This document shows, in pieces, positions 4,485 through 6,771 of a DNA stretch of 64,000 nucleotides (positions are counted from its first letter, which is position 1; each line of letters starts with the position of its first letter). The translations under genes and the position numbers were made by a program. The DNA is taken from sequence record OP380601.1; one strand, 5' to 3'. The notes beneath the pieces are model-generated. The model made no database searches. It saw only the letters and a program-made list of their open reading frames with translations, and had not been told where the DNA came from.

Positions 4485-4745
4485 ATCAGGATCCGTAGAC
4501 TGTGATTACATCCTTGGTTGATACGCTATCACTAAGAGGAAGGGAAATCAACCATATTTTGTCCATCTGTTCGTAGTTTGGTTAAGGACAGTAACCTCTA
4601 GTTTCACCCTGCTAGTCAAGGGGTAGTTTCCATATCGTCTTTATACTACCAATCCCGCCTATAAATTACAAGCACTTTATAGGATATCCAGATTCTCTAT
4701 GGCTGGCTTCTTCCGGGGATATACGCCGTTATCCCGTTCTTGTGC
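4485..4745 (-). ncRNA. candidate structured ncRNA C, between tRNA-Pro and tRNA-Thr
   Basis: Seven back-to-back hairpins: 4488-4514, 4515-4554, 4560-4590, 4598-4615, 4622-4650, 4658-4683 and 4714-4736. Confidence 0.5.
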
Positions 4746-4750
4746 TAATT

Positions 4751-4828
4751 TGGTCCGTGTGGAAGGATTCGAACCTTCGATCTTCTGGTCCCAAACCAGA
4801 CGACTTAACCTGCCTAGCCTACACACGG
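4751..4828 (-). tRNA. tRNA-Pro(TGG)
   Basis: TTTGGGA loop in stem TCTGG/CCAGA, TTCGAAT, CCA. Confidence 0.95.
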
Positions 4829-4831
4829 ATA

Positions 4832-4902
4832 ATCTATTGAGTGGACTCGAACCACCAAAGTTCCGCAAACACCATCGCGGCTGCGTGTTGCCTACAATAG
4901 AT
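4832..4902 (-). ncRNA. degenerate tRNA-like element
   Basis: 8-bp acceptor-like stem ATCTATTG/CAATAGAT and T-arm GTGG-TTCGAGT-CCAC; aberrant D and anticodon arms; no CCA. Confidence 0.55.
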
Positions 4903-4904
4903 AA

Positions 4905-5110
4905 ATATATTTACCCCGTCTATATCTTCCGTTATCAGGTAAACCTATATGTCATTATATAAGCACGACCGAGGGAACTACAAAGATTCTGTCCGAGGGT
5001 TTTATCGGAACGTCTTCCAACTTCTGTTATTTGTCGGTCAAAACATCTACATTCTAACCAGCGTTGCGATTACAGGGTGTGAAACTGACTAAGAATCTAG
5101 AGCCCATAAC
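4905..5110 (-). ncRNA. candidate structured ncRNA D
   Basis: Nested stems GACCGA/TCGGTC (4967-5039) enclosing TCCGA/TCGGA, and ATTCT..AGAAT (5051-5096); no ORF. Confidence 0.35.
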
Positions 5111-5818: not shown

Positions 5819-5936
5819 TTTTGTGTAACGGGACTCGAACCCGCACCATCAGGCGACTAAGGCCCGGTATTTACATACTTTTCAGTAATGGATGGAGTCG
5901 ATCCCATCATGTTCTAACCATTAAACTATACACAAA
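5819..5936 (-). ncRNA. tRNA-like RNA with the anticodon arm replaced by a ~65-nt multi-hairpin insert
   Basis: Acceptor TTTGTGT/ACACAAA, canonical D-arm TAGTTTAATGGTTAGAAC, T-arm GCGGG-TTCGAGT-CCCGT; no anticodon loop; no CCA. Confidence 0.65.
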
Positions 5937-6066: not shown

Positions 6067-6142
6067 AGGTTGCGAGTGGCTGATTCGAACAGCCGACCTA
6101 CAGGTAATGAGCCTGTCGAGATGACCACTTCTCCAACTCGCA
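6067..6142 (-). tRNA. tRNA-Met(CAT), probable initiator type
   Basis: TGCGAGT/ACTCGCA acceptor, CTCATTA loop; 3' end encodes ACCT rather than ACCA. Confidence 0.85.
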
Positions 6143-6740: not shown

Positions 6741-6771
6741 ATCATATCACGATATTCGATGGTGTGTAAAC
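6741..6771 (-). promoter_or_regulatory. early (sigma70-type) promoter of the tRNA operon
   Basis: GTTTACA-N18-TATGAT with TG extension; T4 early-promoter -35 GTTTAC. Confidence 0.7.

Follow-up and report, generated by a model that had tools for sequence, protein, structure and literature searches.

The tRNA array of Aeromonas phage avDM6 contains a tRNA-shaped gene interrupted by extra hairpins, which raises the question of whether its RNA decodes, is spliced into an ordinary tRNA, is a decayed relic, or serves as a tRNA mimic. The window analysed here, a stretch of 64,000 nucleotides, is 100% identical to the genome record of this T4-like phage (OP380601.1; Straboviridae, Ishigurovirus). The element occupies positions 5820-5935 on the minus strand (116 nt, with discriminator A at 5820) and sits within an array of 17 tRNA genes called by ARAGORN, packed tightly between two ordinary tRNAs: only 3 nt separate its start from the CCA end of tRNA-Asn, and tRNA-Ser(UGA) follows 8 nt after its own end. 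The original prediction, made from the letters alone, was a non-decoding tRNA mimic whose anticodon and variable arms had been replaced by a multi-hairpin insert.

A canonical tRNA body with a two-hairpin module at the hinge

The Rfam tRNA model (RF00005) matched the element end to end (5935-5820) at 44.1 bits against a gathering threshold of 29 (E 1.3e-08), bearing out the predicted integrity of the acceptor, D arm and T arm. The acceptor 5' strand UUGUGUA (5929-5935; this and the following features are all on the minus strand) pairs with UACACAA at 5821-5827, with 7/7 pairs in both avDM6 and its relative, phage 65, and an eighth pair (U-A) possible beyond these 7 bp; U8 and A9 follow. The D arm (5911-5926) consists of 4 bp, GUUU and GAAC, closing the loop AAUGGUUA, in which A14, A15 and G18G19 are present and to which phage 65 and a third lineage from public run X6 add one C. 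The T arm GCGGG/UUCGAGU/CCCGU (5828-5844) is identical to that of avDM6 tRNA-Asp. Taken together, the acceptor, D and T stems form 16/16 pairs in both aligned genomes, with U8, A14, G18G19 and UUCGA in place. At the 3' end, UACACAA is followed by the discriminator A and the trailer AAAGUUUA.

The bottom half is where the element departs from an ordinary tRNA. Between A26 (5910) and C27 (5866) lies an insertion of 43 nt (5867-5909), comprising hairpin 1, with stem GAUGG/CCAUC and the 8-nt loop GAUCGACU (5891-5908), hairpin 2, UACU/GAAA/AGUA (5876-5887), and the 9-nt, A-rich, single-stranded linker UGUAAAUAC (5867-5875). The anticodon arm, although separated from nt 26 by these 43 nt, is complete: CGGGC/CUUAGUC/GCCUG (5850-5866) has 5 bp, a 7-nt loop and U33, with the anticodon UAG followed by U37 and C38, so that position 37 is not a purine. 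After it comes the 5-nt variable loop AUGGU (5845-5849, as placed by the Rfam alignment), which is the same in the three lineages and whose U48 can pair with A15. In the RF00005 alignment the bottom half appears as a 59-nt gap standing for 15 anticodon-arm positions. All three hairpins listed by the original prediction exist, but its premise that the anticodon and variable arms are missing does not hold; as the third one forms a regular anticodon arm with a normal variable loop after it, nothing was replaced and 43 nt were inserted exactly at nt 26/27. In-silico deletion of the 43-44 nt yielded, in 3/3 lineages, a canonical cloverleaf with anticodon UAG that default ARAGORN accepts. The body of the element is thus fully canonical in its acceptor, D, anticodon, variable and T arms and in its core tertiary partners, and the gene is real and unusual, carrying a structured two-hairpin module at the D/anticodon hinge.

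Standard tools pass over this gene. Default ARAGORN did not call it, and neither did Rfam at the gathering setting over the 64-kb window, where the match appeared only when a short stretch was searched. A pseudogene or intron call by ARAGORN had been anticipated: the default run made no call, whereas its intron models did report introns, but with lineages disagreeing, namely a 28-nt intron in Tyr(GUA) for avDM6 and one of 43 nt in 'Stop(UUA)' for phage 65. We rejected these calls on account of their mutual disagreement and their unconserved anticodon stems. A batch Rfam scan of five related arrays (35 kb) lost even the known phage-65 copy, which scores well above gathering, and we regard that scan as uninformative for this reason. 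Once a search covers more than a few kb, the speed filters of Rfam/Infernal discard tRNA genes whose internal inserts are long. Since both default ARAGORN and these filters skip such genes, insert-bearing tRNA genes are probably under-annotated in phage genomes. In GenBank the site is unannotated in avDM6 and phage 65 and appears in phage 65.2 as a 118-nt 'tRNA-OTHER'.

Homologues of the element were found only in phages 65 and 65.2 and on one contig of public run X6, so that it is not unique to avDM6. A blastn search against 50,697 phage records returned avDM6, 65 and 65.2 only; scans of IMG/VR by DNA pattern and neighbouring proteins gave phage 65 plus chance matches, and the corresponding scans of JGI metagenome contigs and GTDB genomes gave one chance match and no new homologue. 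Run X6 (DNA, 2025) contributes an 823-nt contig spanning 5820-5936 with 12 substitutions and 3 indels. As this variant was rebuilt from a difference table in which the outer ~30 nt per side hide 4 unlisted substitutions, it was used at 5851-5907 only.

All three bottom-half hairpins are kept by compensatory changes on two strands in these three lineages. The first pair of hairpin 1 is G-C in avDM6 and phage 65 and G.U in X6, and the second is A-U in avDM6 and G-C in the other two; the stem of hairpin 2 reads ACU/AGU in avDM6 and GCU/AGC in both phage 65 and X6; and pair 28-42 of the anticodon stem is G.U, U.G and G-C, respectively. Stem cells are 100% paired; hairpin 1 and the anticodon stem show double changes, to which X6 adds further compatible ones. 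Random placement of the substitutions preserved all 14 pairs in only 0.6% (phage 65) or 2% (X6) of trials. Folded alone, the 60-nt bottom half gave the same three hairpins in each lineage, hairpin 2 being predicted independently each time and the linker remaining unpaired in all three folds, and an alignment fold recovered the cloverleaf together with hairpins 1 and 3. The latter superseded a minimum-free-energy fold of the whole element, which breaks the T arm and reaches a z-score of only -2.1.

Sequence conservation is distributed unevenly over this structure. The loop of hairpin 1 and the anticodon loop (YUUAGUC) are unchanged in the three lineages, while the linkers and the loop of hairpin 2 (GAAA in avDM6, GAAU in phage 65, GAAC in X6) vary. 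Between avDM6 and phage 65 the body is identical at 71/73 positions, canonical tRNAs of the array mostly reaching 95-100%; the insert is ~70% identical, and several array spacers were replaced outright. This pattern points to selection on the structure of the insert and on the sequence of the two loops. In substance, this part of the original prediction is borne out: a structured RNA of tRNA shape that lacks CCA and keeps its elbow. It is also conserved, with compensatory changes in its hairpins and a body preserved like that of real tRNAs.

Other features proposed for the insert fared less well. Hairpin 1 had been likened to a second T-loop, but the register common to the three lineages gives a loop of 8 nt where a T-loop needs 7. 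The UGAUGG repeat, put forward as a source of alternative pairing, is a kind of 6-mer repetition expected ~1.5 times by chance in 118 nt, and in phage 65 and X6 only the 5' copy changes in step with CCAUC, pairing with the 3' copy being left with an A-C mismatch. A kissing contact of GACU in the hairpin-1 loop with AGUC in the anticodon loop was given low odds, a 4-nt complement having a chance of ~0.08 and the contact being sterically awkward in the L-shape; both loops are invariant and so offer no covariation to examine. A tag-like reading frame of 17 codons (AUGAUG...UAG) was discarded as unconserved, with an early UAG stop in phage 65. The insert is also not a repeat or mobile element, as it is present in a single copy in the 234-kb genome.

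The same data bear on whether the element is simply a decaying pseudogene, a tRNA gene struck by an insertion, deprived of its CCA and carried along as a functionless passenger of the array. The missing CCA would fit such a history, as would the fact that neither ARAGORN nor the annotators of avDM6 and phage 65 called the gene, and these arrays do hold several aberrant tRNA-like genes, with members gained and lost between relatives. Decay is nevertheless difficult to reconcile with a body that is 71/73 identical while spacers of the same array diverged or were replaced, with substitutions in the 14 stem pairs that are all compatible with pairing (P about 0.006), and with two loops invariant in three lineages. 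The conservation pattern argues against a decaying pseudogene, which we consider very unlikely.

Array context, the missing CCA and decoding

A promoter-like site on the minus strand (6741-6770; TTTACA, an 18-nt spacer and TG-TATGAT) was found by consensus scan shortly before the tRNA that opens the array (Arg, 6726), and between it and the element there is no terminator-like site, save one inside tRNA-Gly. This site could drive a transcript that contains the element. With a promoter-like site ahead of the array and no convincing terminator before the element, co-transcription with the neighbouring tRNAs would be expected. In the index of public runs, no RNA run covers the element locus, runs X1-X3 matching conserved tRNA pieces only.

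The absence of an encoded CCA, as originally noted, sets the element apart from its neighbours. CCA is encoded by 15/15 canonical tRNAs of the array and is missing from the element in all lineages, its place being taken by AAA in avDM6 and phage 65 and by UGA, read from a loose end, in X6. The only other CCA-less genes of these arrays (in avDM6, 65/65.2 and Aswh_1/ZPAH1) are likewise structurally aberrant. In avDM6, a 72-nt tRNA-like gene at 4831-4902 on the minus strand, directly upstream of tRNA-Pro, has an 8-bp acceptor, a good T arm, an abnormal D region and no CCA; ARAGORN assigns it a 4-base anticodon, GGUG, and the Rfam tRNA model does not match it at E up to 1. Phages 65 (L003, 1769-1844) and 65.2 (L002, 1770-1845) carry a 76-nt tRNA-like gene that is absent from avDM6 and lacks CCA; its acceptor reads UUGUAUG, its anticodon loop, CACAAA, has 6 nt, and its discriminator is A73. 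In Aswh_1 (L020) and ZPAH1 (L021), a syntenic 75-nt gene at 2463-2537, after the second tRNA-Met, shares the T arm of the element, does not encode CCA and lacks U33 in its anticodon loop; its 'anticodon' is ACU in the one and ACC in the other even though the phages are close. The nearest matches to the element body are these odd genes and tRNA-Asp, with 60-66% identity, which is too low for orthology. The 76-nt gene of phages 65 and 65.2 is the closest relative (66%); for the Aswh_1/ZPAH1 gene we claim no orthology, as its 61% body identity is no better than that of tRNA-Asp. Also in the window, a second tRNA with a CAU anticodon (6068-6142, minus strand) has U37 in its loop CUCAUUA and ends in ...ACC-U rather than CCA; this loop is kept in Aswh_1 and ZPAH1.

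Elsewhere in the genome, OP380601.1 encodes at 199663-200772 (L178, 364-1473) a class II nucleotidyltransferase whose nearest relatives are bacterial CCA-adding enzymes. It scores 223 bits against PRK10885, below the equivalog cutoff. The enzyme is present in 3/3 Ishigurovirus genomes tested (avDM6, phage 65 and Aswh_1), and at a separate place the same three genomes encode a T4 Rnl1-type RNA ligase.

These observations allow for an RNA that keeps its insert, receives CCA from a phage or host enzyme, is charged and reads CUN codons. LeuRS ignores the tRNA anticodon arm and would be the most plausible charging enzyme, and the hairpins would project from the hinge in the manner of a class II variable arm. 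A decoding role stays conceivable in view of the regular, invariant anticodon arm with U33 and the sense anticodon UAG; A73, A15-U48 and every core pair are intact, the body is under tRNA-like constraint, the phage encodes a CCA-adding-like enzyme, and CUU and CUA are frequent codons in avDM6 (18.9 and 10.5 per 1000 codons, at a genome GC content of 37%). Set against this are the want of CCA in an array where all canonical neighbours encode it, the unusual U37 and C38, and redundancy, since a canonical tRNA-Leu(UAG), 100% conserved, stands in the same array. Moreover, the 26/27 hinge flexes during decoding. The likeness to class II tRNAs (Leu, Ser, Tyr) lies in an extra helix at the core junction, UAG and A73 of the element being Leu-like; however, the class II arm is a single hairpin on the 3' side, at nt 44-48, whereas the element has a short class I loop and its extra domain on the 5' side, at 26/27. 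No tRNA or structural class with an arm at this hinge is described in a review of non-canonical tRNA structures (PMC7609411). On balance, we regard such an extra-armed decoder as unlikely.

Interrupted phage tRNA genes and excision of the insert

Insert-bearing phage tRNA genes have been encountered before, in the Lak megaphages, where the inserts were called 'enigmatic introns' (10.1101/356790; PMC6784885). Like those genes, the element has a canonical top half, 30-60 extra nucleotides in its bottom half and a shape that standard finders skip. To gauge how common such genes are, we searched IMG/VR for a structural pattern in which a D arm is followed, after 55-85 nt, by a T loop. About 150 loci were returned, and good acceptor stems were present in 64 distinct genes. 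For most of these, which cover many isoacceptors, a perfect anticodon arm reappears once the insert at 28/29 or 29/30 is taken out. Genes of this 28/29 class (L030, L031, L044, L047, L053, L054, L078, L082, L085, L140, L154 and others) lie mostly on contigs of 40-170 kb from one sample set and have inserts of 40-55 nt. Such inserts run from a 5' UAAAA through a hairpin and ACAGCAA to an A/U-rich tail; the exon/insert junction RCG|UA (the bar marking the boundary) is complementary to UAC(A)GC of the ACAGC motif, and no Rfam family was matched by them. In a separate set (L084, L087, L092, L098, L141 and L158), the insert itself holds T-arm-like and D-arm-like hairpins, matching the 'tRNA inside a tRNA intron' of Lak megaphages.

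Most of these phage inserts are placed at 28/29-29/30 in the anticodon stem, and others in the anticodon loop; the insert of the element differs in lying at 26/27 and forming two hairpins. With the 28/29 class it has in common the region, the size and an A-rich 3' tail, but avDM6 and phage 65 have neither UAAAA nor ACAGCAA, while X6 has ACAGCAA as a strand of hairpin 2; kinship with that class is possible. Closer to hand, the T4-like Aeromonas phage Aeh1 (L181, AY266303.2) has three consecutive insert-bearing tRNA-like genes at 4647-4765, 4781-4897 and 4914-5035. None is found by default ARAGORN and only the third is annotated, as a CCA-encoding 'tRNA-Val CAC' of 122 nt that has been listed without comment (PMC1524935). 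This third gene scores 53 bits against the tRNA model with a 53-nt gap and has the same T arm sequence as the element; it differs in carrying its insert inside the anticodon loop and in encoding CCA, and the inserts are without sequence similarity to that of the element. The second Aeh1 gene resembles tRNA-Asn(GUU); its insert, placed at 29/30 and of the UAAAA...CUGCAA type, belongs to the 28/29 class and, like the element's insert, ends in UAAAUAC. A tRNA with a two-hairpin module at 26/27 is an architecture not described before, within this wider family of interrupted phage tRNAs.

This family lends itself to the idea that the 43 nt are an intervening sequence, excised and the halves rejoined to give an ordinary 73-nt tRNA(UAG), possibly by a nuclease together with a phage kinase and the Rnl1-type ligase that these phages encode. 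Exact removal leaves a canonical tRNA in all lineages, and the insert evolves as an intron might, free in sequence and kept in structure. Among uncultured phages, tRNA genes that combine an insert with an intact anticodon loop are common, Aeh1 has such genes as well, and the Lak megaphage paper chose the term intron for such inserts (10.1101/356790). Short archaeal tRNA introns at non-canonical positions, including the D/anticodon region, are likewise free in sequence and constrained in structure (PMC4090602). Archaeal introns, however, are cut by EndA at a bulge-helix-bulge, neither of which was found here. By inspection, no such motif is present at the junctions of the element, and no fold contains a helix that joins them. 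A search for the splicing endonuclease (EndA, PF01974) was negative in the three Ishigurovirus genomes, with control genomes positive, and RtcB was not found in the phage genomes. Rfam returned no ribozyme or intron match on the element up to E = 10, and 43 nt are too short for a group I intron. The UAAAA and ACAGCAA motifs of the common 28/29 class are absent from avDM6, and Rnl1 is known for nicks in the anticodon loop, not at position 26/27. Excision of the insert also receives a low probability in our assessment.

A candidate tRNA mimic and what it may mean

The reading that we favour, tentatively and with somewhat less than even confidence, is that the element is a non-standard tRNA mimic that retains its insert and engages a tRNA-recognising protein rather than serving as a routine translator. 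The element would be transcribed within the array transcript and released by the enzymes that free its neighbours (RNase P and 3' trimming). The two-hairpin module would then be retained in the processed RNA, because no machinery for splicing at nt 26/27 is known from this phage or from bacteria at large. Its intact top half would keep the RNA recognisable to tRNA-binding proteins, the phage CCA-adding-like enzyme being one candidate, while the altered bottom half and the unencoded CCA would hold it out of routine decoding. Its partner might be a host tRNA-targeting defence nuclease, for which the RNA would act as a decoy, or a phage factor that reads the hairpin-1 loop, which by its invariance looks like a recognition site. 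According to published work, phages use tRNA loci against tRNA-cleaving defences, and in T-even phages these loci are battlegrounds (PMC13096335), which makes a decoy role reasonable.

In favour of a mimic we count the cloverleaf left after insert removal, the paired stems, the conservation of the body and the model score of 44.1 bits, together with the way in which aberrant shape and lack of CCA go closely together in these arrays, the U37 in place of a purine, the redundancy with tRNA-Leu(UAG), and the lack of EndA and RtcB in the phage. Against it we count the regular anticodon geometry with its invariant sense anticodon and the demand for CUN codons. By established identity rules, A73 and A15-U48 would suit LeuRS. 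U37 may be tolerated in avDM6, given that the tRNA-Met-like neighbour also has it, and the missing CCA would be no barrier to charging, given the CCA-adding-like enzyme encoded by these phages. In addition, many interrupted tRNA genes of other phages have kept a perfect anticodon loop, which suggests that such genes decode.

Known RNAs that borrow tRNA features offer partial parallels to the mimic. The T4 species 1/2 RNAs (rnaC and rnaD), whose function was still unknown in 2022 (PMC9697503), are small stable RNAs at the end of a T4-type tRNA cluster, and in rnaC an acceptor-like stem is combined with a T arm. They differ in lacking sequence similarity to the element and in their fit to the tRNA-family model (17.5 bits for rnaC and none for rnaD), whereas the element is a complete cloverleaf. 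YrlA and tmRNA resemble it in keeping the tRNA elbow and an acceptor-like stem while the anticodon side is rebuilt, but the YrlA model (RF02553) reaches 16.1 bits here against a gathering threshold of 69, and there is no Ro-binding stem. This YrlA match proved to be an artefact spanning two genes, the T arm of tRNA-Asn and the D arm of the element, and an Rfam tmRNA match is the T arm of tRNA-Asn and not the element.

In a broader setting, the element may be a cultivable example of a wide, undescribed class of modules at the hinge or the 5' anticodon strand that are either spliced by an unknown route or act as functional extra arms, a proposal that we regard as possible but rather doubtful. 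If such modules are kept as a functional arm, they would constitute a third structural class of decoding tRNA, and if the element itself is kept and charged, it would represent a new tRNA architecture. Should the element prove to be a mimic, it would add to the ways in which phages handle tRNA-directed host defences. Insert-bearing tRNA genes were reported in 2018-2019 from uncultured megaphages; a covariation-backed gene of this kind is now in hand in cultured T4-like phages (65, 65.2 and avDM6, with further cases in Aeh1), making the fate of the insert testable at the bench.
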